Part shown: one piece after another, positions 17,181 through 60,963 of the stretch
How the letters are laid out: each line of letters begins with the position of its first letter
How positions within the stretch are numbered: position 1 is the stretch's first letter
Assembly (NCBI GenBank): GCA_021613535.1
Contig: CP075492.1
Span: 2,108,001 to 2,172,000, forward strand
Length of the DNA: 64,000 nucleotides
Direction of reading: 5' to 3'
Source of the DNA: Adineta vaga
Taxonomy: Eukaryota > Animalia > Rotifera
The notes under the pieces: generated by a model
What the model saw: only the letters and a program-made list of their open reading frames with translations
The model's database searches: none
Told to the model about the DNA's origin: nothing
Program-made: the position numbers and the translations under genes

Positions 17181-19620
17181 CCCTCGAACGGTATCCCCAT
17201 TTTATCACACGAATGGTCTTTGTGGGTCCAGAGAGACCCACATAAAAATAAGTTAGATAAACTTGATTTTTCATCAATTCTGTAGTAGATGCGGTTTATT
17301 ACACCTTATACCCTACGTTTTATCAAAGTGTGAATATATTAGTATGTCTGTAATGTATAAAAGCGACGGGTTTTTTTCATGAAAGTTTTTGAAAAAAGGT
17401 TATGATAGGATTTTAATTTTAAAATGATACTGAATGAATAATAGATATGATTGCAATATGAATAGTGAATATCTTTGTATATATATATATATAATTTATT
17501 TATGATCTCGTGTATAAAAACTAAAAACGCTTTCTTTTATTCTTAATAATCGATAAAAAAACATCAACATCAATATCATGCTAAAAAAATTAAGTTCTGC
17601 TTGTATAGTGATGTTAGTCAAGTTTCATGTTGTTGAATCATTTTTCTGCACATGAACGACAAATGACACTGGTGAAACTGGATGAATGAGATCTGCAGAC
17701 ATTATGTTTACATATGTCACAAACTTGTTGTACTTTACGGCCAGGATGCGATGGACACATATAACACCGTCGTTTTCGTTTAACAGATTTTTCCATATGT
17801 ACTTGATTTATCGATAATTTCGGCTTTAACACAAAACCAAGAGATTGTAATGCAAGTTTTACTTCTAATGTATGACCAGATTGTTCACTACGACGTATAT
17901 TCTGAGGAATTGTTAATGATCTTCCGAGCTCTTCTAAGAAAAGACGTCGAACATGTTTTCGTTGATTATGCCAATTTGGATTTTTACATAACCTTAAAGT
18001 CATTGCATTGATCGCTGCAATATCGATTAAATTAAAAAACACAATCATAGGCCATCTTTTACTTATTCTACGAACTGTGTAACCGTTGATACATTGATCC
18101 ATCACATCCACTCCGAATTTTGTTTGATTATAATCATGTATCATAACAGGCAGTTTCGTTTCATCGTCGAACACCTCAGGAATGTTGTGCAGAGTTGATA
18201 ATAAAATAATTGGTGGTTTCTTCTCTTTTGCTTGATAAGACAATAGTGTACGTGCATCAGAAAAGAAAAACCAAGAAGAGTAAAGATTATTTCGAACAAT
18301 TTTTAATTCACCAGGAACAAATGAACGTTTGTGATTAACAACACCTAATGAAGTCATTTTTCTTTCAAGTAAACCATTAGCTAAGTCGAAACTAGTAAAA
18401 TATCGATCGTAAGTTACGTTACGACCTTGCTTCACTTGATCAGATAATTTATCAATCAAACGTAAAACAACATCTGTAGAAAGGTTTCGTTGAATCACAT
18501 TATTTATTTTACCAGCATATATTTCTAATGCTAGAGTGTATCTAACATCAACATCACATAGAAGCCAAAACTTAATTCCGTATTTACTTGGTTTATTGGG
18601 CATATATTGAACAAAGGAACATCGACCACGGAATGGTACCAGTTGTTCATCAACTGTTACATTATCACCTGGAATAAAATGTCGAGGTAATTGGTTTGCA
18701 AAAGATTCAACAATATATCGAATTGGAGCCAGCCGATCAGATTTATTACGTTTTAGACGATCATCAAATCGTATAAATCGTAAAAGATTTTGGAACCGTT
18801 TCAATGTCATTGTAGCATGATATAAAGGACAATTTTTGCTAATATCCCATAATTCATCAATAGATCGATGACTCATATGTGCAGTACCAGCTTGAATTAA
18901 TAAACCGAGAAGAGCTTCTAATTCAATACGATCGAGTTCCTTCCATTGAATTAATTTTAATTTATAAATACCAGCATTTCGTTTTTGATTTAATTGATTA
19001 TAATATCTTCGTGCATAATTATTTGTGTGTAATACTATTGCATCTAATATTTCATCGATCAAGAAGAGCTTGAAAGCATCAACTATTGTATTAACAGAAG
19101 TAACAGCACCTGATTTCTTCTTGATAATGTTAGTAGCCCGAAGACGACCATGATTTGTGCTACATTCTTTTGTCCATCGAATACCATTTTTTTCTAATGA
19201 ATCAGGTTGAGTATTGTTATTGATATCATTATCGGTAGCATAAGAATCAGATGAGTCATCATCTTTCGAAATATATTCATCAATGGATGTGTCATTGGAT
19301 TCTGTTTCAGATCCACAATAATCTGAATCTGAATCAGAACCCGATTTATCATCCTCAGAAACAGTGTTATCAAGATCATCATTATCATTTCTAAGATAGA
19401 TCTCTCGGATCCTTTTTAGATTCGTTTTACTAGTCATTTTTTATCTGAAAAACTAAGAAATTATTGAATTGTGTATATAAACAATCACTGAAGTTTTCAG
19501 ACTAATTATTTTCAGCGTGAAAATTTAGGATACGATTATTGTGATGATCACGAACCATGAAGAGAGAAATATTTTGAAGAAGTATAACAAAATCGTCAGA
19601 AAAATATTTAAGAATGTAAA
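17181..19620 (-). mobile_element. piggyBac transposon with only one terminus retained
   Basis: TTAA (17177-17180) followed by CCCTCGAACGG and a GGGTCC..GACCC subterminal palindrome downstream of the transposase; no matching GGG-TTAA end seen upstream. Confidence 0.8.
17638..19437 (-). CDS. piggyBac transposase, apparently intact (599 aa)
   Basis: Acidic N-terminus; DDD triad VTVDEQL / VTYDRYFTS / GVDVMDQ; YMPNKPSKYGIK; C-terminal Cys-rich domain RCYMC...CDICKHNVCRSH...CRSC. Confidence 0.95.
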   Translation of the reverse strand: MTSKTNLKRIREIYLRNDNDDLDNTVSEDDKSGSDSDSDYCGSETESNDTSIDEYISKDDDSSDSYATDNDINNNTQPDSLEKNGIRWTKECSTNHGRLRATNIIKKKSGAVTSVNTIVDAFKLFLIDEILDAIVLHTNNYARRYYNQLNQKRNAGIYKLKLIQWKELDRIELEALLGLLIQAGTAHMSHRSIDELWDISKNCPLYHATMTLKRFQNLLRFIRFDDRLKRNKSDRLAPIRYIVESFANQLPRHFIPGDNVTVDEQLVPFRGRCSFVQYMPNKPSKYGIKFWLLCDVDVRYTLALEIYAGKINNVIQRNLSTDVVLRLIDKLSDQVKQGRNVTYDRYFTSFDLANGLLERKMTSLGVVNHKRSFVPGELKIVRNNLYSSWFFFSDARTLLSYQAKEKKPPIILLSTLHNIPEVFDDETKLPVMIHDYNQTKFGVDVMDQCINGYTVRRISKRWPMIVFFNLIDIAAINAMTLRLCKNPNWHNQRKHVRRLFLEELGRSLTIPQNIRRSEQSGHTLEVKLALQSLGFVLKPKLSINQVHMEKSVKRKRRCYMCPSHPGRKVQQVCDICKHNVCRSHSSSFTSVICRSCAEK

Positions 19621-19649: not shown

Positions 19650-21833
19650 GAATCTGGATTCAATGACTCTTTATCAGCTTGGATTACTCCTGAGTCATTA
19701 TCATCACCGGCCGGTGATTCCGGTTTACTTGTACTTCAAGACATGCCACCAATTCGAGCGGGAGAGGATGCATTACATTTGGAAGTAACTAATGATAATC
19801 AACAACACAATTATTTAACTACGGAAGATATAGGCGAAATAAAAGGTGCTTCATTAACTGCTGGTGTTGTAATTCAACCTGTTTCTTCTTGAAGTTCAGA
19901 ATCGGGTATGTTTTCTATTGTTTGAAAGAAGATCTAATAAATAGTTTACAGGTGTTCATACATTTGATCTTGGTCAGAATATTGCTGGATGGTGTCGTTT
20001 ACGATTTCTTGGTCCACCAGGTTATGGTACATATATACGTCACGGAGAATCATTAGTTCAAGGAACTGTTGGAAATAAGTAATCAATGATTTATTTTTCG
20101 ATCTTGTATGATCATAATTTAATTTTAGTCAACCTACTAAAAATATTTACACAGAAAATCTTCGTGAAGCTGTTGCATCGGACACTTACATTCTTCATGG
20201 TGATCCAGTTTTTGAAATTTATGAGCCAACGTATGACATTTCTTTAGTATTTGTTTTCATTTCAGTTGGTATTTTCTTTAGTTTTACTTATCATGGTTTT
20301 CGTTATATATCTGTATATGGTTCACCCAATCCATTGGCTCTCGATGATGTTGAATGTCCTTTCGTACATAGTGAAACAACATTAAAAGGTAATTTCACTT
20401 CGAGCAATCCCATTATTAATCAAATTCAACATAATGTTCAATGGGGTCAATTAAGTAACTCAATGTCTTTACCTACTGATTGGTAAGTTTGATTGATAGA
20501 ATATTTTTCTTCTGAATTCTATTGTTTTAGTCCACAACGTAATGAACGTCGAGGATGGATGGGAGATGCAGCACTAACAGTCAATGAAGCCTTATATAAT
20601 TTTGATTTAGTCAAATTTTATCTAAATTTTCTTAATTTAATCTGTGATGTTCAATTACCCGATGGACAAGTTCCAGATTTCGTACCTGGATCCAGTTATA
20701 ATCCCGATCCAAATTGGGGAACTGCATTACCAACAATAGCTTGGCAAGTTTATCGACATACGAATGACTCATCACTTCTCGAACCTTATTATGACAATGT
20801 TCGTGCTTACGTAGAATATATTCGTAAGGGATATAATCAAACTGGTCTTGTTAATTTATTCTGCAAATATGGTGATTGGGTTCCACCACCACCATTTGGT
20901 CAAACTAATAGAGCTCTTATATCATCATTTGCTTTTCTTCATGATGTTAATATTCTATTAAATATGTCTCAAGTGTTGAGAAAAACGAGTGATACTGCCA
21001 TATATTCAGCATTTTATGAACAACTTACCCAAGAATTTCATCGTGTCTTTTTTAATAATGCAACAAACACTTATGCTGATGGAATGCAAGCAGCTCAAGT
21101 CTTAGCTTTGGCATTACCTGGTGTTGTACCACCTAATGTACGTGGTGTTGTTGTCGATAATCTCGTCACAGATATTAGCAAACAAGGAAATCATGTAACA
21201 ACAGGCATTGTCTCTAATGCTCAAATCTATCCTGTTTTATCTGATAATGGACATCATGATTTAGCACTTGAAGTAGTTACATCAATAACATATCCATCTT
21301 ACGGTTATATGTTTAACAATCCTTATGAAAATGCCACCACTATTTGGGAATTATGGAATGCTCCACTTACAGGACCAGGCATGAATTCACGTAATCATCA
21401 TATGTATTCTACTGTTGGTACATGGTTTTATACTCATTTAGCTGGTATTGATTTTACATCAGATGCAATCATTATTCGACCACGAATGGCTTCTGAAGCT
21501 AAAAAACATTTGATGAAAAAATTAGATTGTCAATTAAGTACATTATATGGTCTTGTACATGTTTCATATACTCGTGATGAACGTGATACAATTGCTAATT
21601 CCATTTTACTTCGTGTTACAATACCACCAAATGCACAAGCTCGTATTATGTTTGAACCATTATTTCCTGGTGCACAATGCAAAACATTGATTGAAGGTAA
21701 CAAAATAATATGGTCATCAGGTGTTACTATTGCAAATAATCAAGAATTTCAAATTGAAAAAGATTTAACAACAAATTTATTGAGTGTACATGTTGGTTCA
21801 GGTCAATATGAATTTCATGCAGTGTGGAATTAA
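19650..21833 (+). pseudogene. Alpha-L-rhamnosidase (GH78, bacterial type) with spliceosomal introns; 5'-truncated, nonsense TGA at 19890-19892
   Basis: Motifs FDLGQNIAGW, TFTYHGFRY, PTDCPQRNERRGWMGD, YGDW, ATTIWELWN, MNSRNHHM; several ~50-nt GT-AG introns; 5' end abuts the piggyBac. Confidence 0.9.
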
Positions 21834-22118: not shown

Positions 22119-22170
22119 AGTGGTGGATGTGGGTGTCTCCTCATCACTTTAACCCACACCCACCCTCAAT
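22119..22170. repeat. Head-to-head telomere-repeat scar joining the TPR fragment to the MULE
   Basis: GTGGTGGATGTGGGTGT-CTCCTCATCACTTTAA-CCCACACCCACCCTCAAT. Confidence 0.75.
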
Positions 22171-30019: not shown

Positions 30020-30068
30020 ATCTTGAGGGTGTGGGTACTCTGTGAAGGGACACCCACACTCACACTCG
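30019..30068. repeat. Head-to-head telomere-repeat scar
   Basis: CATCTTGAGGGTGTGGGT-ACTCTGTGAAGGG-ACACCCACACTCACACTC. Confidence 0.8.
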
Positions 30069-30404: not shown

Positions 30405-30595
30405 TTGGGTGTGGGTGTGGATGAGTGTGGGTGTGGGTGTGGATGAGTGTGGGTGTGGGTGTGGGTGTGGGTGTGGGTGTGGGTGTGGGTGTGGGTGTGG
30501 GTGTGGGTGTGGGTGGGGGTGTGGGTGTGGGTGTGGGTGTGGGTAAAAAAACGTTCTACACCCACACCCACACCCTCACGCCTGCACCCTCAAGA
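30405..30595. repeat. Head-to-head telomere-repeat scar with a long (TGTGGG)n arm
   Basis: ~140 bp of TGTGGG repeats, AAAAAAACGTT spacer, then CTACACCCACACCC...CACCCTCAAGA. Confidence 0.95.
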
Positions 30596-32310: not shown

Positions 32311-32567
32311 AGGATATTGGCTGAATACCGTTCTGGTTTTCACGATCACATCATATCAGAATGGCTGATGCTTCGCTGAGACTCTGCTCTTCGCAATATT
32401 GGTTCCCCTGGCGTTGTTGTTCTAAAGTCATCGTTGTACTATTCATTTCTTTTGATTCGTAGTTATTAATAGAGATCAGGTTGTCGGAAATGCAGTTATC
32501 TGTTGTTTGGGCCCCTCTGAATCTTACTATCGTTTTCTCTTTTGCAATTTCGATTTTAAAGTATTCT

Positions 32568-32714
32568 ACCGGTTTCGACCTTGTCCAAGGGTCTCATCAG
32601 ATGGATTATGTCTGCATATCCTCACATCATGACTTCAAATGCTGAATGGCTATTTATAACAAAAGCATTGGAGAGAAATTATGTGATATGCAGACATGAA
32701 CTACCATGACCGGT
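32568..32714 (-). ncRNA. Type III hammerhead ribozyme with extended stem I (minus strand)
   Basis: ACCGG-TC-ATGG..long hairpin..CCAT-CTGATGA-GACC(cttggacaa)GGTC-GAAA-CCGGT. Confidence 0.85.
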
Positions 32715-32852
32715 GTGTGTCTGTCTTCTGACTCTTCGCAGGGCTCAACTACTCAAATACTAATGATTTTGTTGTCATACTGTAGTATGAAAAATAATCT
32801 TTATTATTTGAGTAGTTGAGCACTGAGAACAGTCAGAAGACAGACACACACG

Positions 32853-32997
32853 CCGGTCATGGTAGTTCATGTCTGCATGTTACATCATTTCTCTCGAAGT
32901 CTTTTCTTATGAATAGACATTCAGCATTTGAGGTCGTGATGTGAAGATATGCAGACATAATCCATCTGATGAGACCCTTGAACAAGGTCGAAACCGG
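32853..32997 (+). ncRNA. Type III hammerhead ribozyme with extended stem I (plus strand); predicted cleavage after C32858
   Basis: CCGG-TC-ATGG-tagttc-ATGTCTGCAT...ATGCAGACAT-aat-CCAT-CTGATGA-GACC(cttgaacaa)GGTC-GAAA-CCGG. Confidence 0.85.
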
Positions 32998-33589
32998 TAG
33001 AAACTATGCAAGGAACACGATTATAGAGACTTAAGTTAGTAATGTATATCTTTGCCGAAAACGAAGACCGACAGCGTTGTGCGAATTACCGTCTCACTCA
33101 GTCGTCATAGTTGTTGTTTCTTGTATCTATACAGGATCATTCTAAAACTAACAATATTCATATATAGTATGATCAATCGGTTTCATGTGAATATTACATC
33201 CTGTTGAACACAGAGAGCTACTTGAAGAGTTCCCTGAGCGAATTCGAAATCTAACTAATACGGATGATTATAAACTTCATATTCCCAATATAAAAATATC
33301 GGACATGATTCAGACTCTACCGATCTATATCGGTGTCATCAAAGGTCTTTCAGCAAAAAAAGTCAGGTAAAACAGATAAAATGCAGCAGAAGCATACAGT
33401 CTACATTGACCAAAATGCTTCTGCTGCTTTTTTTTATCGGAGTCAGAAATATGTATCCTTGCCTAAAATTCTCTGTAACGTTTACAGTAGACTATCTGTC
33501 ATCGAAACACTATGACGAGAAACATAAACATACATTTCACTTCCATACGATTACCGAAAATCAACTCAGCAATTAAAGCCAAACATAAA

Positions 33590-33814
33590 CCCACCGAATA
33601 TCGGGAGATGTAGGTTCGATTCCTGCTTTGATTTTATGATCTTTCTTTACAAGTTATTCGTACTTGTTTAGACATATCCTTGTGGTTGCATTTTCTTTAA
33701 TTTCGAAGATATTTCCGTGGACAAAAGAAATGATTATTTTGCTTTATAACTCGTTCATTTTCTTATTTTCAAACTCACCCTCACCCTCGCCCTCACACCC
33801 ACCCTCACCCTCAA
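33590..33814 (+). mobile_element. tRNA-headed telomere-joined element, copy C (diverged, 5'-truncated), followed by (CACCCT)n
   Basis: ATCGGGAGATGTAGGTTCGATTCCTGCTTTGATT head; same body hairpin; ends TTATTTTCAAACTCACCC-TCACCC...CCCTCAAT. Confidence 0.8.
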
Positions 33815-34524
33815 TCTTAATTTCTTTTTAGCTGCATATAATAATAATCTCCATTCGTTATTAAAATTTAATAAGATATCTGATGATCTTCTTAGCAGAA
33901 GTGAAATCTAGATTATGGCAGCTAGTGTCACCCTCACCCCTCACTCCCTTGGTTAATCCGACGCCACGTCCCTCAATGCTCACACGTATACCCGTATTCA
34001 ATGCAGCATCCTATTCGAGAACCAGCACAATCAACTCTATTTGTAGCACAGATTCATTGACGAATATCCGCAGAAAATACTCGTAAAAGTGCTCCAAAAA
34101 CCCAGCTTTTGGGTCCTAACCCCCCTTATAGGACCTACGACCCCCCCTCTCAAATGGTCTCATTCGATGCAGAATTTAATTCTGCATCCAGCACAACCCT
34201 TTCCAGAGCCAGCACAGATTCATAGCCGAATATCCACAGGAAATACTCGAATCCGCTGCTAACTTTACTCACGTATAGAAGACCCATAGAAGAAAGAGAG
34301 AACGAGAAAGACGAAAGATCGTCCATCTATTATAATAGATGGCGATCCTGACAACTATACTATAGCGAAATTTGAAGACGAATCGTTAATGGCATGATAT
34401 TTTTTTGAACGATTAGTTGAAAACAACAATAAAAAGTACATGTTTCGTGTCATATCATCGATACAATCCGCAAGTACAATAATGCTATGATCGTGTCAAG
34501 TGTTCTGTCTCCATATACTATCCA

Positions 34525-35273
34525 TTAGTTGCCGGCGAATATATAACTACCCAGAGGATCCCGATTAAAAAGCCAAATACTAAGTGACAGGAAGAAAACT
34601 CCCATAAAAACCGATACGCCACCACAGATCAAGAAAATACGACCAAGGCGAGAAGTAGGCTGCTTCCAGCGAGCCTCCGTTGGTTGTCGTCCATCGTACC
34701 AACATGTTTCTTCGTTGTTGATCTAGGAAGTAAACAAATTGATGATATACTGATGATTACACTTACTGAAAAATCTTTCTTCATCCTTTTGTAGTATATA
34801 CTGCTGATGAGCAATATTCACGGTTCACAAACATAATTATTTCTGATGACATGAGTATACGAAAGTTAGAAATGACTTACACATTTCACTGGCCTTTTAT
34901 ATGTCTTATTTTAATCTCTGTTCTTAATGCTAATATTTACCTTATGTGTAGCTGTTTGATTCAGCGCATCCGTTGGAGATTGATATCTTTTTTCACTTTC
35001 TACAGTAGTATTCACTCGCGGTTTTATATCGAGTTGAGCTTTCCATGCGGCACTATAGCAGTTAAATGTGGTATAACGTGTTCGACATGTACGATTTCGA
35101 TAACCAACATTGAATACAAAACAAGTGCTCTGCTTGTAATTTTTTTCTTTCGAATAAGCATCTCTATAGACAAATACACCAGCAATCAGCAGACCCAGAG
35201 CTATCCCTAGGAATGTACAACCGATATAAAGTGACATGTGCGCCCTGAACTTTTTGCTGCTTTTCTGATCCAT
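34525..35273 (-). CDS. Two-TM protein with a Cys-containing loop, BK-channel beta-subunit-like topology (exons 35273-34941, 34722-34525)
   Basis: TM1, loop with TC..C..C..CWYD, TM2; phase-0 GT-AG intron joins in frame to TAA. Confidence 0.7.
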
Positions 35274-35989
35274 ATCGAGTAAGATGTGTAAAAAGGAAAA
35301 AGAATATCAAACTTCGTTGTTTTGTGTTACAGAACTTTGTTTTATATACGTGTTTTATTCAAACAGCCACGTGTAAAATAAAACGGTGAAATAATTGCAA
35401 CACTATTGCATGAAACGATGGAAAGCAAATAAAGAAAAAGTTTCGTCAGAAGAGAATCAGCATTATTTTTCGTTATAGAACGATCGTTCTTGATGTCAAG
35501 CAAATATTTTGTCCTTATCAAACATTTTTCGGAGTAATGCACGTCAATCGTTCGTCATGAATCACATACATATATTACTTTTGATCATACAAGAATACAA
35601 AAACACATGATGCAACAACGATATTTCATTGCTTAGAAAAAAGAAGTAGCTGTTCGACAATGAACAATTTCAAATCGATTAGTAATTTTTTCATCCTGTA
35701 GTAAACGTACTGGATGATTTTTGAGTTTAAACAAGGATTGAAATGGATTTATATATGAAAAATGAATCTTTTTTTAGGCTCTGATCATTAAGATAGGTGA
35801 ATGTAAATATAAAGATGAACACATGTGAACAAGAAATGAGAATTTCATATACTCACTCACATTCGACAAGATTGCCACCGTTCGTCTCGTTCTTTTATCT
35901 GTATTCCATTGACGATATTATGAAACAAACAAAATTTTGCTTTTATCTTTTTCTGTAAGTTATTATTGTTTGTATTATGAATATCTGTG

Positions 35990-37817
35990 AAGATGTTATT
36001 TATCATAATACTCTTGCTAAGCTATCCATTGCTCAATCGTGCAACTATAGTTCATTGTGATTTTGATGTCACCTTTAGTTTAACAAATGGTGAACATTCT
36101 CAAGAGATCGATTATGATTACACACTAATGGCAAAGAGTGGTCATTATCGTTATTTTAATCGACAATTTAGTACACTCAATCGAAGGACACAAATAACAA
36201 CAATCAGTCGTTTATAACCATTGATTGATCGTGCTATATATTTTAGTGTATGGTACTATATGCCTCATGCAAATTTGCCATTCGATATTGAAGTTGGACA
36301 AGATGATGATGGAGAACTCGTACGTGCGATATTTTCTACTGCCAGTAGAAATATATCGACAAATGATTGGAGATTCATCAATGTTACATTATGAAATGAA
36401 GAATTAAAAATATATATTCGATTGTATGTTACAACTCAATCTTTAACATTCGATGATTTTTCAGTGGATTATTTTTATGCATCACATACACCACCACCAA
36501 AAACGCTAAATTCTTGTGATTTCAAATTATCATCATCATCGTGTACAAATGATTTGGTTTCTTTATCTGAATATCTCTATCAATGGTTAATTCTGAACAC
36601 TACGGATGGCGTCAAAGTTCAAACAGGTGCTCCATCTATGGATTATACATTTCGAAATGCCTCAGGTCATTATGCATTATTACCCGGTCCTAAAAATGGT
36701 TATGTTGGTTATCTTCATCTACCAAAAACAACTTCAAATTACATCGAAAGAATCATATTGCTTAAATTTTCAGTATTATGAAACGGAACGAGTGAATCGA
36801 ATGTCGTTCGTGGTTGTCAGATGATCGAACTCTCTCCCAAGATCGAATCCTAACACTCGCACTATTTTACTTGAATTGTAGATATACAACGAATGACTGG
36901 TAAGTATCTGAAATAAGTTTGAATGACGCTATTGTACGACTATGACGTCGTAGTTGATTACAAAAAAAGGAATGTTTTCACATCTTTGAACCGATCTAAT
37001 TCTTTTCTACATTAGGACTTGGGATGTCATCAATCTCCCCACGGGTAATTGTACACCATTGTTTCGTGTATTTAATGGAGATCAATATATAAGTACATTT
37101 GCCATTGATAATATTGCTATTATGTCATGTGATTATCCTTCTTTTCAACCTACATCATACAAGACTCTACTTATGTTTTCATGCGATTTCGATCAGTCCG
37201 ATATGTGTAGTATGACGAACACTGGTCCAATGTTGAAGCCTACTTTTAATTTCATGCTTTCAACCGGTGAGACCATACCAAATAAAGATCTTGGATCAGT
37301 ATAAGATCAAACACATAATTCAACATTGGGTGGTTTTCTCTATTGGAATCGACAATTACCACTTACTTTACAAGATTCTGGTAGAATAATGATATCGAAA
37401 ACTCTTGTAGGTGATTCGGGTCTGTGTCTTCATTATGCATTTTATGTAAAATCAAAGTCGATTAACAAAAATACACCGACGATCATCGTATCCTATTGAC
37501 CCTATTCGAATAATTTATGGACAAAATCCTTAGACGATAGTCAAGGATGGCAGTTGGTCTTGGTTAATTTCTACTATAGTCTTGATGAGAAAATATTCTA
37601 TCTTTATGTCAATCAATCGACATCAATTCCAGTATCGATCGTTTTTGATGATATTAAAATTGATTTGTGTAACCGTTTATCACCTACAACAATATCAACA
37701 TCTAGTAGCAGTAGCGCATCCTCAAGTACAAAAAAATTACCTAGCACTTCAACGAATTTTGTTACAACGGCTCCTAGTCACATGTGGCTGATTTATATCA
37801 TATCATGGATACAGTGA
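35990..37817 (+). pseudogene. MAM-domain secreted protein pseudogene (multiple frameshifts and stops)
   Basis: Signal peptide; repeated CDF, DYT..SGHY, CLNFQY, FAIDNI, IVFDDI motifs spread over different frames. Confidence 0.75.
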
Positions 37818-38741
37818 AATAATAACGTATTTGTTCTTTATCATTTTTTACAAGCGTTTGTATTAACGTATATAATCGTTTGTAACGTGCTAGTTTCATC
37901 TGTTGGGATTGAATATGAGAATGAATGATGTCATAAAAAAAGAGTCAGTCTGAGCATATCAATCGATTGTTCAACCATATCGTACTCACCAGCAGAACAG
38001 TACAAGAATATCATAAAAGAAATAAAAGGTCATACAGTAGGAAACCAGCTTGACCATGACTTTAAGACAATTAATATTCGGCAGAGTTACCGAAGATTAA
38101 GAGTTATGAATTTTGTACAAATTCGTTTTGCATCAATAGTAGGAGGAAAACTCGCTTCCTTTGAATGCATTCATTGTAATGGCTCAATATCCAATATGCG
38201 TTAAATTTCAATATTTAGGATCGTTTTTACACTGCTGCTCTGGCTTGAGCTAGCATTCATCTCATGGTAGTTACTTCACATTGGATTAACACTTTCGATA
38301 GGAAGCCGAAAATCAAGTATCGTACCTATAACAATACTAGTACTACAGTTATACAACTTTAGTGGGCTATTTCTTCAAACAATGTGAACATCTATAAAGA
38401 TATTCTCATCATGGATATGTAAACCATTGAAAAAACGTTTTCTACTAGAACGTCCATATGGCTTGATCCATTCCTTCTCATCTGCCAGTGAAACCTGTTT
38501 TTGAAGACTTGTCGCACCCGCACACACCTTACTCTTTGGAAGCTCCATGGTGGAGGTCAGTTGATGATACAGCTTGTTTATTATATATATAGGATGAAAA
38601 ATCTTTATGACTAGCGCGATCCAATGCTAACAGCATCTGTGATAAACAAGTCTTTCATAGAGATCAATATTCTTGTTTCTTGATTAAGAAATCTTTATGG
38701 ATTGATCAACGTCATGGGACATTTTATATAAATAGGCTTAA

Positions 38742-38810
38742 CCCTTTGAGTCCTGGTGGTACATATATGTACCACCTAGCGAAAGTTTTTAATTTCCAAA
38801 TATGTTTGTG
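38742..38810. mobile_element. Orphan piggyBac-like terminus
   Basis: TTAA-CCCTTTGAGTCC plus the palindrome GGTGGTACATATATGTACCACC; abuts the truncated 5' end of Athena-1. Confidence 0.5.
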
Positions 38811-38857
38811 GTTTTTAAGATCTAGTAGGAATATTATCGAATGATGTACGAGTAAAG

Positions 38858-40671
38858 ATGGCGCTTCCTGAATTACGACAAATTGTCAACGAATTTAAAT
38901 CCCAAAAAATATCAAAACAATTAAAAAGACGTGCTCAACGAGAATATAAAATTATTCAAAGTCTACGTCGATTATTACGTGAACGACCTGATATTATGAT
39001 TTGTCGAACAGAAAAGACCAAAACATTATATATTGGTAATCGAATGACAATGACTCGTAAAGCATACGAATATATGACTAAAACATCAGCTTATGAAGAA
39101 ATTACTGATAATGGTTCACCTTTAACTTTTATATTACAAGGTCTACATACATTACTTGATTCTATTGTGCGCACACATGGTCTAACTGATAAACAACGTA
39201 AAAAATTACTTCCAAATTTAAATCGTGTAGAATTAGCACATTATCATGGTTTACCAAAGACACATAAGATAGGAAACAAAACGCATTATTTTATTTATTT
39301 TTTAATAATTCTACTTTTAAAATTTAATATAGGATGGAATACCATTATGACCTATTATTGCATCTATTCATTCACCGAAAACATTGCTGTCGAAATTTCT
39401 AAATGATCTTCTTGCACCTATCTATCTACAAGTGGCACGTGACACAACATTTATTAATGATATCGATTTAATACGAAAATTAGAAACTCATGTTAACCAA
39501 GGTTTTTTTAATTCAACCACAAAATTTGTTATAGCTGACGTGAAAAATCTTTATACGATGGTACCAAGAGATGGTGCAATACTAGTATTGGCTAAATTTT
39601 TAGAAAAATATGCAAAAAATAGAAAAATCGGTACATTGACAATTGATCATATACTACGTATGGCTCGTTTCATATTGGATACAAATTATTTTGTTTATAA
39701 TGATAAATACTACAAACAAATACGTGGTGGAGCCATGGGTTCCGCTTTCACACAAGTTCTAGCCAATATTTATATGTTTGAATGGGAACAAGACTTAATT
39801 GCATATATACACCAACATAATGGAATCTATGGCAGGTATGTAATGTATTCACCAACGAAATAGATTTATTCTATTATTTTTCTTCCTTAGATATATTGAT
39901 GATATCTTCATCGTTACGAATCAACCAATTGCCGAGGTACAAGTGGAATTACAAAAAGCTCAAATCAAAGATATTAATATTGAGATAACACCAGAAATTA
40001 GTTTGTCAGTCAATTTTCTCGATGTATCAATTACTAATGAAAATGGTCAATTAAGAACATCGATCTATCATAAACCAACTGCCGAACCATACATATTACC
40101 TTATACATCAGATCATCCACGTCATATTCATCGTAATATACCATATACAGCTTTATTACGTGCAGCTCGTCTTTGTTCACATGTCGAAGACTTTAATACA
40201 GAACGTATTCGTATTGACATGTCTCTCTTATTAAATAATTATCCACCAAGATTTATCACTTACCAATTTAAAAACTTTTTTCACAACTACAATGCACTTC
40301 CTGTCTTAGAACAATTAGATACAGATATCTATCAACGATTACATCATGAAGTACTACATAAACCTTCACGACGTGAAAAACAATTGAATACCTCGATAAA
40401 AGATCCAGTTCAATATCCTGCTGTCTTACAAAAAAAACCATGGAATAAATCAATTATGTATGTAAAATATAAATATGATAGTGCTCTAACAACACACTTT
40501 CCAAAACAATTCAATCAATGGTGGAATAAACATTTTAAATATGGCCCCAATGATCTGAATAATGCACGCATTCTTCTGATAGGAAACACCAATCGAACAC
40601 TTGAACAATACTTAATCCATAAAAAACCATCAAAAGAAATACTAACCAAAATACAATCAACAGAAAACTAA
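38858..40671 (+). pseudogene. Athena reverse transcriptase with introns at ~39269-39332 and 39836-39890; TGA at 39348-39350; first donor mutated
   Basis: YHGLPKTHK, ADVKNLYT, GGAMGS, R|YIDD split by an intron, NFLDV, YHKPT, SDHP; no GIY-YIG domain. Confidence 0.9.
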
Positions 40672-41201
40672 TATCATTTGTGCATTTAAATTTCAACAAA
40701 AAACACTTTTCCTCTCTCATTCAATACTAATGTACAATTCCTCCTATTTTCCTTCACTAACAAAAAGACTATTTCTTTTTTTCTTCAAATAAAACCCATT
40801 CATTATTCCTCTGTTACTCACCTATCATTCTCGCTTCCATCTCTTCATAAACACATCTATGTAATCCTTTTTAGATTATACACATTTACATATGCAAACC
40901 TCCAAACCAAGACTAATTATCTATTACATATTGATGACAAGTAATGTATCATTCATATATCATAAACTTCTTTCTTCTATCTTCAGACTCAGCAGACTAG
41001 CCGAACAAGTGACCAAATCGCGATCGTACGATTGCTTTGAATTATTTTGTTATCTGTAAACTCACCATTTACGTAAGAAATCATTATATTCTATACATTT
41101 CATGTAATTACTATTATATATATATGTTAGATGTTTCCTTCTTTAAGTTAACTTCTATAATTTACATGACTAATTATTATATAGTTTCATATAGTTCTTA
41201 A

Positions 41202-41245
41202 CATACCCGTTGAGTTCCTTAAGCAAGAACGAAACATGTCGTATG
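41202..41245 (+). ncRNA. Type I hammerhead ribozyme with a degenerate core (probably inactive)
   Basis: CATAC-CCGTTGA-GTTC(cttaagcaa)GAAC-GAAA-CATG-TC-GTATG; a more decayed copy lies at ~40985-41070. Confidence 0.7.
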
Positions 41246-41645
41246 ACTGCTTTGAACTATATTCTTATTTGTAAACTCACCCTCACCCTCACCCTCACCC
41301 TCAAACTCACCTTAGTTGTTACGACCTTGTTACGAATAAAGATCTTAGTTTCGTAATAGAGTTATGGAAAATGTAGTAACTCTAATGTCCTGATATGTAC
41401 ATTGATATCTTTTGATTATCTTTTGATTATCTTTTGATTTTCTTAAGATATCATTTATGTATCGTGGATTAAGAGTTCTGTTTTGCTACATTCGAAGTTT
41501 CTTTTGTTGCTTAACTAGGTTCTTATAGTCCTCGTGCAACAATAAGAATCCTTATTAGTTAATCATTTGATCATTAATGTCCTGAACTATCGATTTTTGA
41601 TTTATTCAGAGTTTTGATATGTTGTTATTAACTAACAGAAGAAAA

Positions 41646-41716
41646 AGTCAGATAGTTTAATTGGTAAAATAGCCGACCAGTTATCGGAAGATGTGGGTTC
41701 GAGTCCTGCTCTGATT
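41646..41716 (+). tRNA. tRNA-like cloverleaf (Thr-like AGT, non-canonical loop) forming the head of a repeated element; probably not a decoding tRNA
   Basis: Acceptor AGTCAGA/TCTGATT; D-arm GTTT-AATTGGTA-AAAT (A-box); CCGA-CCAGTTA-TCGG; T-arm GTGGG-TTCGAGT-CCTGC (B-box). Confidence 0.7.
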
Positions 41717-41895
41717 TAATGATCTTTTTGAATAAGTTTCTCGTACTTATTCAAGCATATCTCTGTGGATACTTTGAATAAATTCGACTCTTTAGTCTTG
41801 CGGACAAATGAGAAGATTTCTAATGAATGATTCTTTCATCATCTATTTTCAAACTCACCCCTCACCCTCACCCTCACCCTCACCCCTCACCCTCA
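41646..41895 (+). mobile_element. tRNA-headed telomere-joined element, copy A (complete head), followed by (CACCCT)n
   Basis: tRNA head, ~145-nt body with the hairpin TTGAATAAGT-ttctcgt-ACTTATTCAA, then CTATTTTCAAACTCACCC and telomere repeats to 41895. Confidence 0.85.
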
Positions 41896-42082
41896 GCACG
41901 AAGAGAAGACACGTCTCATGTTAATCCATAGTGAAATGCGTGTATAATGTGAGCACTCACGAGTGTCTCATGAATAAACGTAGAAGCAAGAAGAAGCGAG
42001 TATGTTAGATGCTATGAAAGTCGAATGGTTGTAGTGGCCGGCGCCATGGACATCAGCAGCATGGGTGACTTGTTCGTGGCGA

Positions 42083-43400
42083 TCACTTTGCTCTAATGAA
42101 GGCGGCGAACAGTGATGTGCGTGCGATTCTTGTTCGCCAGCGCTGAATGGCCTCGATGAAATCTTTCATGTACGATTGTGAAGGAACGATGAAGACAACG
42201 AAAATCAACATGGGCGGCGCAAAGGAGATGAAGTAGCCAATTACATAGAGACGCGCATTGCGTGGCGATTTCATGCATCCGGATAGGAATGAGATGATCA
42301 GACGAGGCACGGCTAAGATCGCCAACATGGTTGGTGAAATGAGCAGATGCTTGTGTTGTTTGATCTGTTCGCGTAGAATCTCCTTGTATGATTGCTTTTT
42401 ATCGACTTTTGCTCGACGACGAGCGGCAGCGATGATGATGATCAACGCACAAAAGCAATTGGCCGCGAGTGGCACGAAGAAATGCAAGGCATTGACCACT
42501 CGATCGAACACTTCGATGGATGGTGTGTACTGAGCGATGCAGAACGTGCGCGACTCTTCTTCATCGTCGACGAGACCGCGATGCAAAGGATCATGGATGT
42601 GTGTACCGACGGTGAAGAGCATGACGAATAGAATGACCCATTTCACGGTACGTTTACTCTTGACTTTGTCGAATGTCACTCCTTGAACAATCGTCACTGC
42701 TCGTTCGATCGCCACACAAGCACTGAGCCAATCGCTACAGCTGAGCAGAACGCGAACAAGAAAGTCCAGACAGCGACACTGACCACCGAGACTAGTACGG
42801 GTACGAAGAGTGCCGATCTGTGAGGCGATCAGTATGGCGAACTTGACGATTAGGACGTTGATCATGATGAGTGAAATCACTGATGAAGCAAAAATATACA
42901 GACCACAGCTAGTGCTGGACGCGGTCTTCGCGCGGACGGTGATCATCGATAACACACTGCTGAGGAATCCCACGGCGAACATCAACGTAGTCAGGGTGAT
43001 GGTCATTTTGACAATGTACTTTTGATTGTCGAGTTTGACGTGCGGTCGAATTTGATAGCCAAAGATGAGGTCCAAGGAAAGCGAAGATCCGTGAGTGGAA
43101 AGGTGACATCGCGAACCGACGTAACAATCTTGGCAGACACAGAACGACGATATTTGACAGAGTTGATCATCTTGTAGGCATTGCCCGGCATTTTCACACG
43201 GTGAATGTCCACGGCAATCGTACGTCATGTTGTAATTGAACTTGAAGCAATTGGCTTGTCGCGAAGGCTCACAGATGCAGAAATGGTCGAAGTCATGAAA
43301 ACACTGCAACGCGGACTGTTGCAGACAGGGCAGATGATAGAGTTTGATGCGCTTGATGATGTGTTGATTGACAATGGTCGTGTTGAACAACTCGTCGATC
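42083..43400 (-). pseudogene. 5'-truncated EGF plus rhodopsin-type 7TM GPCR gene fragment, GC-rich
   Basis: CENAGQC...CVCQDCYVGSRC EGF; seven hydrophobic segments with WLSACVAIER; the frame runs into a telomere tract with no true start codon. Confidence 0.85.
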
Positions 43401-43436
43401 GGTGGGTGGATGTGGGTGTGTTTAAAGAAATCAAAC

Positions 43437-43489
43437 TACCACAATCTAGATTTCGATTCCTATTTAACAGAATCGTTCATCAGGTGGTA
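43437..43489 (-). ncRNA. Type I hammerhead ribozyme
   Basis: TACCAC-CTGATGA-ac-GATTC..GAATC-GAAA-TCTAGA-TT-GTGGTA; the surrounding ~108-bp module differs by one base from 52142-52250. Confidence 0.85.
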
Positions 43490-43722
43490 AAGAAATTCTG
43501 CAATATCAGTAAACTAAAGAAAATCTTTTGAAATTTCGTAGATTTTTAGAAAGTTTTCAAGAAATGACTGCATAGAATGTTACATGGGCGAAAAAAGTAA
43601 ATTCTATTAAAAGGCAAAGACATATAAACAGGGCGTATGAATTGATATGCAATTGTTTAAACGGTCATTTAATTAAAGAGAGGGCTTAATATTGGTCTTT
43701 GTGATGGCGGCTTTTATTTCTA

Positions 43723-44320
43723 TTATGGGATGGAATTGTGATAGCCGTAGTAGAAAAGAATTTGTTGAATTGTTTGGAAGGGAAGTATGAGATGTTTTGG
43801 TTTTTCTGTTGCTTTCTTCGATGGATATTGTTTATAACCATGTAATTTTGATAGGAATCGGCCGAATTCTAGACAGTTAAAGTCTCCTCTAATATAGTCA
43901 TTCCATGGCAAAATATTTTGGGTAACTTTGTAATTACAACATGTACCAGTAATTGTGTCGAGAAATCGAGTTCTTTTATTGATTTTGTTCTTAAAAATAA
44001 TTTGTATATATAATTCTTTTAGAGGGTATAATGGATTTATTTCTTGGCCGACACAAAGATATTGTATTTCTTCATCATAAAGTTCTTGTCGAATATAATT
44101 CATAATAGTGTGTTTTGAAGTAGTAGTCCATGATATAATAGCTGATGATTCTGAATTATGTTGAATTGGCTCTCGAAGAGAAGATGGTGGTGGCTCTTGT
44201 AGATTAAATTGACATAGGTTAGCAATAGTTGGTCGATCAAGATCAGCATATTTACTGTACCAAGATTGACAATTAGGCTTTTTATCTGTTTGATCGACTG
44301 TAAGTTGAAAAGATGTTTAC
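43723..44320 (-). pseudogene. Degenerate Rep-like (HUH rolling-circle initiator) ORF
   Basis: Frame open upstream of Met44103: IISWT (motif I-like)...YLCVGQE..ELYIQIIF (motif II position, His lost)...WNDYI (motif III Tyr). Rep-like ORFs are known terminon cargo. Confidence 0.45.
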
Positions 44321-44857
44321 ATTGTAAATTCTGATGATTTTTTGATGAATAGGGTCAAGTAGTTAGATCTTAGATGATAAGATGTAGGTTAATTGTGTTT
44401 TCGAAGCTTAATTTTTGATGGAAGTTGTTGTAATATACATATATATCTAGAGAGGGAACGATGGCAAAAGATCAATTCATGTCTACAAGATTTAAGGAAT
44501 GTTATATTGATTAATACATTTCTAGTCTAATGAAAATAGTCTATAGGACGTATGTTTTCGTAAAATAAAGATGGTATGCATGATCTATAGAAGTGGGTAT
44601 TATTATGAGGTAAATTGTTGGTTTTCGGAATATAAAGAATCGTAAGTACCATTATTTACGCCATAAGTACTCTGTAAGTGTTTGGAATCATCCATGCTGT
44701 GTTGTTTGTTTGTTAGATCTTGAGTAATTTTATCGATTCGAACATTAATTGAATCTATATGTGAACGATTGCATTTTTTTCGAGTGTTTACCGTACCACT
44801 ATACTCTATAATAAATTATACATCAAAGTGAAAGGGTGAAGAAAATGACTGAGAAAT

Positions 44858-45265
44858 CTAGTCACCTGTATCTAATGTTAAGTTTCGTCGCGTTTTTTTA
44901 TGAACCAAAGAACGATAGAAATATGAAAGTATAATTGCAAAGAATATTACTAGCAGAATACAGGCAATAATAGTTTGGTGATGTTGAGTTTTTAGAGTGT
45001 GTAGGAATCGGTCAATGCTCGTTGATGATTCTGATATATCCGTTATTGAAGATATTTCTGAATTAGTTGGTGTGCCCATTATCCATGATGTCGTTGTAGA
45101 AATTTGTGTATCTGATTTTGGTTCAACCACTTGAACATTGTAGTGTTCTAAGTTCTGTAGAAAATCGGCGGTTGAAGAAAAGTTAGTCTTTAACATGTTC
45201 GCTCGTGGTCTATATTCAAATTGAAGTTGACCATTCATCATAACAAGATTCTTCAATGAACTCAT
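44858..45265 (-). CDS. Small single-TM protein, probable terminon ORF
   Basis: 135-aa ORF with a Ser/Thr-rich stalk, TM IIACILLVIFFAIILSYFY and a basic tail. Confidence 0.55.
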   Translation of the reverse strand: MSSLKNLVMMNGQLQFEYRPRANMLKTNFSSTADFLQNLEHYNVQVVEPKSDTQISTTTSWIMGTPTNSEISSITDISESSTSIDRFLHTLKTQHHQTIIACILLVIFFAIILSYFYRSLVHKKTRRNLTLDTGD

Positions 45266-45768
45266 ATTTGTAATTGTTTAATATCAATGAAGTGAAAAGG
45301 AAAAGGAAAAATCTAAAATAGAAAGAAATATCCTTAAATCGGAAGAAAAAAAATCTGAACAAAGACTAAGCGATAGAAAAGAAGAGTGTCTACTATATGT
45401 AAAAGTTCTATTTTCAACAAAAAAAACAAAGATATTTGTGATAGGATTGTATTTTACGATTATTTATTATGTCTACATTTCATACTACAATGTTAGTAAG
45501 ATAAATAATAACGTTTTGTTATTCTAAGAATATAATGTATATAGTTTGATGTATGTTGTTATTATAGATTCAATCTATATTATTTCATAAACATCGCTGA
45601 TTCTCGTCTTTTTGTGACGTTTTGTCAGATGGTTCTGGTATTGTAATCTAATTATGAATAAAAAGATTCATTTCTCTTAGAAGGCTAGATTCAATATGTT
45701 TGAACTTATGAATACGTACCTTCACGTCTGTTTCGACTTTTTTCTCTGATTCTTTTGTTTTTACAGGA

Positions 45769-46006
45769 GCTTCGCTGAGACTCTGCTCTTCGCAATATTG
45801 GTTCCCCTGGCGTTGTTGTTCTAAAGTCATCGTTGTACTATTCATTTCTTTTGATTCGTAGTTATTAATAGAGATCAGGTTGTCGGAAATGCAGTTATCT
45901 GTTGTTTGGGCCCCTCTGAATCTTACTATCGTTTTCTCTTTTGCAATTTCGATTTTAAAGTATTCTACCGGTTTCGACCTTGTCCAAGGGTCTCATCAGA
46001 TGGATT
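45769..46006. repeat. 238-bp direct duplicate of 32370-32607
   Basis: Apparently identical sequence containing the start of ORF MNSTTMTLEQQ and the HHR core. Confidence 0.9.
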
Positions 46007-47405
46007 GTGTCTGTCTCCTGACTTTTCGCAGTGCTCAACTACTTAAATAGTAACGATCGTTTTTGATACTGATAAGATATTCAAAAATAACGTTCTCATG
46101 TTTAACACAAAATAAGAGAAGAATATTCAAAGGATCAATAGACAAGTACATGGAAAAGCAAAATAGTAACTTCTCATCGAAACCGGTCGGCTACGTATAG
46201 CCATGGAAAGTCTCGTCTTCACCTTTGATATAAGATAATGAAAAATAGTCATCGACTTTATTCTTAGCTTCCTTTTTATTAAATGAAATAAAACTGATCG
46301 ATAACAGAAAAAGTTACTTTTTCGACGAATTATCATTTGTCTGTGGTGTTAAATCGACATAATACTATTTGTTTGTCGATGTCGATGTCGATGTAGTAAC
46401 ACCGAGCCTTTTCGATTCTTCTTTTGCTTCATCTTCATCTCGTTGTCTACGTTCTGCTGGATTACCAACATCGATCTAATTAATACAGAAATAGTTCAAT
46501 ACTTCATATTTCTCATAAAAATTCTTTTCTACACATCTTACCCATTGTCATGGAAGTTCTTCTTCCATGTACACATTGAGATACCAATTAATGTAATCCT
46601 CCAATATCCGAGGATTATTTAATCTCGGATTTGAAGGTGTTAATCCATAGTATCGCCGATACATTGGTGAATAAAAGAATTGACTATTAGCCGACACCAA
46701 TGGAGTTCCCTACAGGATAGAAGTAGTATGAAACAAGTTCGATTCCAAAATTCATGTTTATTCAAAGTTGTCCTTACCACTGTTCCTTCTCGTTTTTCAC
46801 CATCAGGTCTGCTGCTTGATGGCCTGTGACCTGAAACAAGGCTTGGTTCAGGTGATGTTGATATCTTTTGTGGTACTTCTTCATGGCATTTTAAACCAGA
46901 AGAAGACCGAGTGACGGCTTCATCAGATAGTCTTCTGATTATAGGCCGTCTTCTTGCTGCTCTTGATGGCATAAGACCATCGAGAAGCCGTTTGGCCAAT
47001 GGTTTGTGGTCGACTGACTTCTCGCGGCTAGGCATATCTGACGAGTAAATATTTATACTTAAATCTAAAGTATAAAGCAAAAATATAATATATCTCTATG
47101 CTCTACATCGATACAAGAGTACGTCATGCAACTTTATTTCAGTCTGACAACTAACAAATGATCATGCAAAAACGAACACATACAATAATAAAAAGAAAAG
47201 AAAACACTACTTCAGATCGACTGTTCAACGTCTGTTGCTTCCATTCTGGTCAATAATGATGCCGAAGGTTTCTTTCGAACAAACAGATCATTCAAAGATG
47301 GATTCGTCAATGCTGTTATCATGACACGTACATCTTTGACAGCTGATCCTTTGTAACCATAATATTTCGTCCATAATTTCCGAAATTGTCGATTGAAATC
47401 CTTCG

Positions 47406-47428
47406 ATGAGGGTGTGGGTGTGGGTGTG
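47406..47428 (+). repeat. G-strand telomere tract
   Basis: GATGAGGGTGTGGGTGTGGGTGTGT. Confidence 0.8.
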
Positions 47429-47697: not shown

Positions 47698-47772
47698 GGG
47701 TGGGTAGTGGTGTGGGTGCGGGTGTGGGTCACACTATACTTTTAACCCACAAACACACCACACCCACACTCT
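47698..47772. repeat. Head-to-head telomere-repeat scar; polarity switch point of the 43.4-56.7 kb block
   Basis: GGGTGGGTAGTGGTGTGGGTGCGGGTGTGGGT-CACACTATACTTTTAA-CCCACAAACACACCACACCCACAC. Confidence 0.8.
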
Positions 47773-60749: not shown

Positions 60750-60963
60750 TTGAGGGTGAGGGTGTGGGTGTGGGTGGGTGTGTGTGGGTGTGGGTGGGTG
60801 GGTGAGGGTGGGTGGGTGTGTGTGTGGGTGTGGGTGTAGACGAATGACAGATCTACACCTCTACCCTCACCCACACCCACACCCACACCCCACCCACACC
60901 CACACCCCACCCACACCCACACCCCACCCACACCCACACCCCACCCACACCCACACCCTCAAT
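60749..60963. repeat. Head-to-head telomere-repeat scar
   Basis: ATTGAGGGTGAGGGTGTGGG...GGGTGTAGA-CGAATGACAGA-TCTACAC...CACACCCTCAAT. Confidence 0.95.

Follow-up and report, generated by a model that had tools for sequence, protein, structure and literature searches.

How does a piece of one gene come to lie inside a chromosome arm with telomeric repeats pointing away from it at both ends? This question is raised by a locus in a bdelloid rotifer, Adineta vaga, found within a stretch of 64,000 nucleotides (contig 3:2,108,001-2,172,000; hereafter the window, in whose coordinates positions are given unless another sequence is named) of the 100.8 Mb genome in 6 contigs that was searched in this work. 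At 41896..43400, at a depth of 2.15 Mb from the contig end, the window carries a remnant of a receptor gene bordered by two telomeric tracts. Two breakpoints, outward-facing G-strand tracts and retroelement 3' termini placed on both tracts are observed at this locus. We consider it probable that the fragment is a doubly healed piece in a Terminon-type chain; this reading concerns the structural mechanism only and not the origin of the DNA.

The exchange of DNA between bdelloids has long been contested, and while earlier claims can be explained by cross-contamination, this locus cannot, and it carries the molecular scars of its own stabilisation. The fragment is a testable candidate for rotifer-to-rotifer DNA transfer, and through it the description of host genes captured between Terminon units becomes a concrete model of two-ended healing, testable genome-wide. 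Even with a vertical origin, it would preserve a clean fossil record of a chromosome fragment healed at both ends, such as has recently been deduced from A. vaga lines exposed to irradiation.

Receptor-gene fragment

The captured fragment lies on the minus strand and is delimited by a GC-rich island, an open reading frame (ORF) and the alignment to a gene of Adineta ricciae. It consists of a coding remnant of 438 codons (42086-43399), its stop codon (42083-42085) and a 3' untranslated region (3'UTR; 41896-42082), all on the minus strand. The compositional contrast reported in the initial annotation is clear, as the GC content of 300-nt windows is 0.47-0.51 across 41850-43350 and 0.29-0.34 on either side. 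For the island as a whole, GC is 0.49 and GC at third codon positions (GC3) is 0.58, with 30% GC in the surrounding DNA, and at the 1-kb scale the most GC-rich kilobase of the window (0.497) is the island itself. A comparison of GC3 with paralogues, which the initial annotation had proposed, gave values of 0.08-0.26 in 19 paralogues, with one at 0.41, versus 0.58 in the fragment. CpG is likewise elevated; however, its observed/expected ratio of 1.34 is within the range of the AT-rich paralogues (0.88-1.45), so the CpG richness is a consequence of GC content, and CpG enrichment was rejected as a separate signal.

The frame is open throughout and truncated at its 5' end, and it contains the 7tm_1 domain of Pfam (E 3.9e-11), the domain of rhodopsin-family 7TM receptors. 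The epidermal growth factor (EGF) part of the proposed EGF-7TM assignment is less firm within the fragment itself, where the cysteine-rich EGF-like stretch stays below Pfam significance; full-length relatives give weak EGF and faint LDLa matches. These relatives are 1515-1600 amino acids (aa) long, and the fragment represents the C-terminal quarter only, corresponding to residues 1078-1515 of the A. ricciae protein. Since the start codon, the promoter and the N-terminal 1077 codons are missing, the fragment is, judged by its sequence, a dead pseudogene piece, a member of the family by descent and non-functional.

The source gene is a bdelloid EGF/LDLa-7TM receptor belonging to a very large intronless family, most members of which are intronless open frames of ~1500-1600 aa. 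A first look at the A. vaga genome gave 546 candidates, and at least 96 matches were scored at E<=8e-100. The fragment falls inside the tree of this family (a quick tree with SH-aLRT support) and is present once in the genome. Among the at least 96 scored paralogues the best is 54% identical at the aa level, and no source gene occurs in the genome; a near-identical full-length copy on the other allele, which would have spoken against capture, was not found in reads from 2013 or 2022. The fragment was not found in any RNA run, which equally is no proof of silence.

Telomeric tracts at the breakpoints

The left cap (41855..41895, minus strand) is composed of six TCACCC-type units on the plus strand, that is, a TGAGGG-type G strand on the minus strand, and it bridges the broken 3'UTR and the 3' end of the left retroelement. 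The right cap (43401..43420, plus strand) is the G-strand tract GGTGGGTGGATGTGGGTGTG. Both caps point outward from the fragment, as had been noticed initially. Across the window, telomeric tracts gave 25 and 95 matches versus 0.03 and 1.35 expected.

Homology to the A. ricciae gene ends exactly at both tracts, and the A. ricciae gene continues past both breakpoints. Contigs from a run of an organism carrying the same differences as A. ricciae (organism B) likewise extend 454 nt and 3728 nt past them. Because homology stops at the tracts and the gene runs on in its relatives, both ends are breaks in a once continuous gene. At the right junction, the first 5 nt of the tract (GGTGG, 43401-43405) also occur in the gene, which places the point of healing within a microhomology between gene and telomeric repeat; at the left junction (41895/41896) the overlap is 1 nt only, a single T. 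Thus, at each end an outward-pointing G-strand tract sits directly on unique sequence whose distal part has been lost, which is the arrangement expected of de novo telomere addition.

Junctions were checked with contigs built from independent runs of the 2013 and 2022 studies. A 1730-nt contig covers 41733-43462 in both with 0 differences and with no branch at either junction, at depths of 41.8 and 10.4, similar to those of the adjoining unique contig (49.1 and 12.8). In addition, at least 95% of the sampled words are present in runs of four studies. Such unbranched contigs crossing the junctions exclude an assembly chimera and, in those reads, a second full-length allele.

A regularity of the tracts themselves was also seen. 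Almost every healed end has TGAGGG (CCCTCA on the opposite strand) as the unit adjoining unique DNA, with TGTGGG units after it. G-strand sites of this form are at 1770, 30024, 47407 and 60751, and C-strand sites at 1829, 22168, 30578, 33813, 33943, 41303, 41895, 50531 and 60961 of the window; loci L040-L045 are alike in this respect. The pattern may reflect the initial alignment of telomerase, or of a retroelement tail, on the break.

Flanking retroelements

Each cap is extended by a retro-module, as the initial annotation had described. On the left is a short non-autonomous module of ~550 nt (41304..41854, plus strand) with a part resembling a tRNA-Thr(AGT) gene (41645-41718, by Rfam/tRNA detection); its 3' end, '...ctattttcaaac', adjoins the left cap. 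At least 28 copies, 81-91% identical, occur in the genome, and at 12 of the 12 loci inspected the ctattttcaaac end is followed by (A/T)CACCC repeats of variable length and then by copy-specific DNA. The 5' end of the module is capped by another telomeric tract (41278..41303, minus strand), beyond which lies the next unit of the leftward chain, a low-copy unit of 7.5 kb (33814..41277, plus strand) bounded by a C tract at 33790-33813. Pieces of this unit are found elsewhere at 96-98% identity, and relatives of it are located at the extreme end of contig 3.

On the right is an element of ~4 kb (43421..47406, minus strand), a mosaic of repeated non-coding modules with no ORF of 150 aa or more, whose 5' end is capped by a G-strand tract (47407..47424, plus strand). 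It has close copies in the A. vaga genome (95-99% identical), and all eight inspected loci show the copy preceded by TGTGGG/TGAGGG tracts and unrelated DNA. At its 3' end, adjoining the C-rich tail, is a hammerhead-like core CUGAUGA...GAAA, with a fold at 43437-43489 of -20.1 kcal/mol (z -2.3) and no Rfam match even at E<=1.

In their mode of attachment the flanking units are of the Terminon/Athena kind, as in every inspected copy a 3' end bearing telomeric repeats in reverse complement lies on G-rich repeats beside unrelated DNA. Several further observations concern these elements. One run, X16, which is presumed to be RNA, has 151-nt contigs on the right element (43453-44127), each with 0-1 differences, and none on the fragment, which hints that the right element is transcribed and the receptor fragment is not. 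Within the right element (45769-47406), a 1.4-kb and a 245-nt module recur five times beside the 3' half of the tRNA-bearing module (C3:2272513-2274522, C1:16142464-16144469, C6:195110-197114, C1:16358398-16360376 and C3:17643683-17645669); with such shared module neighbours, the left and right elements form a single modular family whose members can exchange their 3' ends. For the tRNA-bearing module, A. ricciae and A. vaga show 92-93% identity (L079:1317-1530 versus C3:20297545-20297758), against 69-86% for flanking protein-coding genes, and organism B contigs were also found on 41599-41808 within this module. Identity between the two species thus reaches 93% in retroelement modules.

Proposed healing of both ends

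The structural reading supposes that both 3' ends of the fragment DNA were once free and that they were sealed through the action of telomerase and/or by copying of retroelement RNA by reverse transcriptase, the C-rich tail of this RNA pairing with the end. Two free 3' ends would mean that there was once a linear molecule of this DNA carrying two neotelomeres, either by itself or, with its chain, as the detached tip of a chromosome. The initial annotation had likened the locus to a tiny linear chromosome; the healing and retroelement extension of both ends agree with this comparison, but the molecule need not have been 1.5 kb long, and a broken-off tip fits equally well. There is a simpler route to such a tip. 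A chromosome end already healed in the 3'UTR would have been extended by the leftward chain (41304-41854 and 33814-41277), after which one further break at 43405 would have detached it, and the new end would then have been healed too. The capped piece would later have been joined into chromosome 3 via telomere-to-telomere joints, for which the candidates are a head-to-head junction (47.7 kb) and a hairpin (32.8 kb).

Several results speak against this reading or limit it. The left tract is made solely of the TCACCC variant, and for this reason the left cap may have been copied from the tail of the element's own RNA, without telomerase. No domain of a reverse transcriptase, an enzyme that in Athena is Penelope-like and endonuclease-less, was detected with Pfam among the ORFs of the flanking chain (20 flanking ORFs), so the units are non-autonomous relatives of Terminons at best. 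Rfam returned a tRNA alone and no hammerhead, either at gathering scores over the whole window or at E<=1 over 40.5-45 kb, and no hammerhead was seen in the left element. Finally, the free linear intermediate is inferred.

Terminon 3' ends are described as (ACACCC)n or (TCACCC)n repeats beside a hammerhead that pair with G-rich ends; telomeric repeats cap the 5' ends of the units, and the capture of host genes between units is frequent (PMC6431247). The locus shares with Terminon/Athena gene capture (Arkhipova, Yushenova and Rodriguez 2017, via PMC6431247) the C-rich 3' tail, a hammerhead-like fold (in the right element), attachment to G-rich ends, units 5'-capped by short telomeric tracts, and a piece of a host gene between units. 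It differs in that the flanking units are arranged tail-to-tail, with both 3' ends toward the fragment, instead of head-to-tail. Moreover, neither unit encodes a reverse transcriptase, and the left one has a tRNA-like part and no visible hammerhead.

Telomeric repeats and Athena pieces have also been reported at the breakpoints of persisting A. vaga chromosome fragments (PMC13564844). In the irradiated or mutation-accumulation lines of that study, as here, repeats and Athena pieces mark the breakpoints, and fragments were stabilised and rejoined, leaving scars. Unlike those fragments, the scar described here has become a fixed part of the reference genome, is capped on both sides, and surrounds DNA with no source gene; by analogy, the locus looks like a fixed fossil of the neotelomere process reported in those lines. 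De novo telomere addition (chromosome healing) is a further parallel, in which telomeric sequence or a telomere-specific retroelement is joined directly to unique DNA at a break with short microhomology, here GGTGG; at this locus, by contrast, a short internal piece has been healed on either side, and the product lies inside a chromosome arm. The capture of genes between Terminon units is already known, as are telomere healing and the neotelomeres of A. vaga fragments, and what is new is the combination of a tail-to-tail doubly healed geometry with a missing source gene and cross-species similarity, although the geometry may already be in the original Terminon paper.

Relatives and divergence

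A profile-free search of 1.84 billion representatives identified one close relative, the A. ricciae protein P0001 (1515 aa, 91% aa identical over residues 1078-1515), so that the phylogenetic check proposed in the initial annotation places the nearest relative in another species. Window positions 41895-43405 align without gaps to L047:3803-5313, with 78 mismatches in 1511 nt (94.8% nucleotide (nt) identity), of which 67 fall in 1323 coding positions and 11 in 188 3'UTR positions. The 3'UTR is therefore 94% identical, while the intergenic DNA of the P0001 contig has no alignment to A. vaga at all. The synonymous divergence (dS) between fragment and gene is 0.094, the nonsynonymous divergence (dN) is 0.040, and 4-fold sites differ at 0.081 (15/186). 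No part of the A. vaga genome closely matches the 3.2 kb that encode the N-terminal portion of P0001, so that, apart from the fragment, A. vaga lacks the gene, and it lacks the syntenic site as well.

The baseline for divergence between the two species consists of nine flanking genes on four A. ricciae contigs by identity (69-86% nt) and of only three of them by dS. These three, neighbours of P0001 on its contig, are 77-86% identical at the nt level, with dS of 0.37, 0.41 and 0.70 and 4-fold divergence of 0.20-0.34 (p<=0.004 versus the fragment); two of the three are syntenic with A. vaga contig 5:4.425-4.436 Mb. Flanking genes on three further contigs are 69-79% identical. Other A. ricciae members of the receptor family vary: P0007 reaches at most 65% nt identity, P0014 has no match at E<=1e-80, P0028 is 78% identical, like its neighbours, and P0012 is 89% identical to an A. 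vaga gene at C1:15.15 Mb, its neighbours being at 76-78%, with dS of 0.20-0.25 and 4-fold divergence of 0.147 (p=0.03 versus the fragment). Of the stretches compared between the two species, the fragment is the most similar, and P0012 is a second family member above the baseline. PMC5916493 contains no interspecific Ks value.

The GC richness is shared by the relatives. In A. ricciae the gene has GC 0.47 and GC3 0.49 overall (0.57 in the aligned part) between flanks of 0.30-0.39 GC, and another family member of that species has GC3 0.31. The A. ricciae gene and two further relatives, from the ENA and Logan collections, all show GC3 of 0.56-0.61. The high GC is accordingly inherited from the gene lineage, and it is not a signature of the A. 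ricciae genome, in which the gene is an outlier as well. The ENA relative is a full-length gene of 1551 aa, 85% nt identical to the fragment, on a contig (L080, ERZ26165376 ctg347812) of 43% GC, measured over 19.6 kb. On the Logan contig (L059, SRR23617210), also 43% GC, the same GC-rich gene is cut at another codon and continues into unrelated DNA (L059:2395), and the two sequences pair with each other at 89% nt identity. In the tree, the fragment, A. ricciae and Logan sequences share a long stem (SH-aLRT 100), and terminal branches of 0.05 and 0.035 compare with a family median of 0.47. Adineta steineri has no member of this clade (best match 53%), and neither peptide patterns nor a 29-nt word conserved in three lineages retrieved anything from JGI metagenome contigs.

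With the full-length ENA gene as an outgroup, changes could be assigned to branches. On the A. vaga branch, 10 changes are synonymous and 20 nonsynonymous, with 19 GC>AT and 7 AT>GC; the corresponding counts for the A. ricciae branch are 15 and 16, with 15 and 7. By these counts, both Adineta copies are in decay from a GC-richer state. Change in the A. vaga copy has been roughly neutral, yet only 2.3% has accumulated.

Side observations were made on the surroundings of these relatives. A head-to-head telomere scar (L080:6930-6986) lies 520 nt upstream of the ENA gene. On the 3' side of the A. ricciae gene, 107 nt beyond the A. vaga breakpoint, there is a degenerate G-strand tract (L047:5421-5478), followed by an Athena-like 3' end that is in inverted orientation and contains a CUGAUGA box; it follows from this arrangement that the gene was once at a healed chromosome end there too. 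EGF/LDLa-7TM genes are non-syntenic between A. ricciae and A. vaga (L077, L078, L069, L079), with nearest partners from below 70% to 89% nt identical, and the family behaves like mobile or exchanged DNA.

Origin of the fragment

The data favour, as far as sequence comparison allows, a common ancestor of the A. vaga and A. ricciae copies that is considerably younger than the split of the genomes. So late a coalescence would in turn imply that the lineages exchanged this DNA or took it up independently from a GC-richer donor. The fragment has no source copy in A. vaga, is non-syntenic, differs in composition from its surroundings, and is not a contaminant, all of which is expected of imported DNA. 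We regard it as close to an even call that A. vaga acquired the DNA, once the species had split, from a bdelloid lineage that was A. ricciae-like or GC-richer; such a transfer is plausible and unproven. The suggestion of a higher-GC bdelloid source, made in the initial annotation, gains support from the nearest relative in A. ricciae, from the full-length relative on a contig of 43% GC and from the drift from GC to AT in both Adineta copies. As an argument for a higher-GC donor genome, composition is weakened by the GC being a property of the gene lineage. The case for transfer has weak points of its own: the divergence baseline is small and gives no firm tail probability, and the P0012 pair is also more alike than its neighbours, which makes the cross-species baseline uncertain. 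The family, or subtelomeric DNA generally, may diverge more slowly or be exchanged often, and any transfer may have run in either direction.

The most serious rival, which concerns origin only, is a vertical remnant, and we hold it to be a genuine if lesser possibility. An ancestral GC-rich subtelomeric gene would have been broken twice in A. vaga, for example by desiccation-induced fragmentation, leaving one healed piece, and the 95% identity would stem from a low local substitution rate. The unusual similarity of the P0012 pair fits such an account, as do the subtelomeric situation of the A. ricciae gene, with its old G tract and inverted Athena-like 3' end, and the equal length of the two branches (30 and 31 changes). 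It is harder to reconcile with the 4-fold divergence of the fragment, which is below that of the P0012 pair and of all three neighbours, and with a 3'UTR that is conserved while intergenic DNA of the same A. ricciae contig is unalignable. Selection cannot slow a pseudogene, and the near-neutral A. vaga copy has nevertheless changed little; neither copy is at compositional equilibrium, GC>AT exceeding AT>GC by more than 2:1 in both, and the rest of the gene and the syntenic site are missing from A. vaga.

The remaining alternatives would change the structural account as well. A processed retrocopy, in which the reverse transcriptase of an Athena/Terminon element copied a 5'-truncated receptor cDNA at a chromosome end and telomerase capped it at 43401, is improbable. 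The order on the plus strand (reverse complement of the mRNA, G tract, reverse-complemented element) would suit a rightward chain, and homology ends 26 nt past AATTAA in the A. ricciae 3'UTR; however, there is no poly(A) between the end of the UTR and the cap, and no target-site duplication or poly(A) at 41896 or 43400. The left C-strand tract, in turn, belongs to the 3' end of a plus-strand element and cannot serve as a G-rich primer for cDNA. Intron loss is useless as a test here, because the family is intronless. Even less probable is 3' transduction, whereby the left element was read through into healed DNA and the RNA of element plus flank was copied elsewhere. The plus strand does have the read-through form (element in sense, C-rich tail, 1.5 kb of flank), but the fragment is single-copy, no second copy of the element has the same flank, and the right junction is a G tract with an inverted element, not the junction of C-rich tail and chromosome expected of reinsertion. 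An assembly chimera or contaminating A. ricciae reads can hardly be credited. A compositional outlier resembling another laboratory species invites the suspicion, which had been named at the outset as a possible refutation; against it stand the contig without a difference across both junctions in two studies at a depth like that of its neighbour, the sampled words recovered in runs of four studies, the 5% difference from A. ricciae, the close copies of the right element in the A. vaga genome, and an organism B run with no contigs on 43506-44173.

Returning to transfer, a claim of DNA passing from bdelloid to bdelloid was reportedly made by Debortoli et al. in 2016 and contested by Wilson, Nowell and Barraclough in 2018. 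The locus resembles that claim in being much closer to another Adineta lineage than is the rest of the genome. It differs in that cross-contamination cannot explain the fragment, since it is joined to resident repeats in independent runs and is 5% different from A. ricciae. On a broader view, which we put forward tentatively and consider somewhat short of an even chance, capped linear DNA pieces would be a vehicle for gene transfer between bdelloids. The receptor piece from an A. ricciae-like or GC-richer lineage would have entered an A. vaga germ cell, where the host machinery would have added a neotelomere or a Terminon-type extension to both ends, followed by telomere-to-telomere appending. 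If this were true, the alternation of capped segments and head-to-head joints in the window would be a record of repeated events of this kind.

Organization of the window

The polarity of telomeric tracts alternates along the whole window between outward-capped segments and head-to-head joints, the latter having the form of a G tract, a spacer of 12-25 nt and a C tract. One of these joints (47700..47768, with a 16-nt spacer) is where the chain that runs rightward from the fragment comes up against a leftward one. On the other side, a hairpin of ~440 nt (32564..33002), with arms of 157 nt that are 91% complementary, sits between the last plus-strand tract (31835) and the first minus-strand tract (33790), and it is likely the left meeting point of the chains. 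The entire window reads as a series of doubly capped segments joined telomere to telomere.

Six head-to-head junctions were recorded (1770-1829, 22122-22164, 30024-30064, 30406-30578, 47700-47768 and 60751-60961), one of which holds a near-perfect TGTGGG array of 138 nt. The outward-capped segment 1829-22122 contains an ORF for a bacterial-type alpha-L-rhamnosidase (20493-21833; Bac_rhamnosid6H, E 1.5e-73) and a piggyBac-like transposase (17638-19437; DDE_Tnp_1_7, E 1.1e-66). Elsewhere in the window, the other Pfam matches are to Kelch, FLYWCH and DDE_3.

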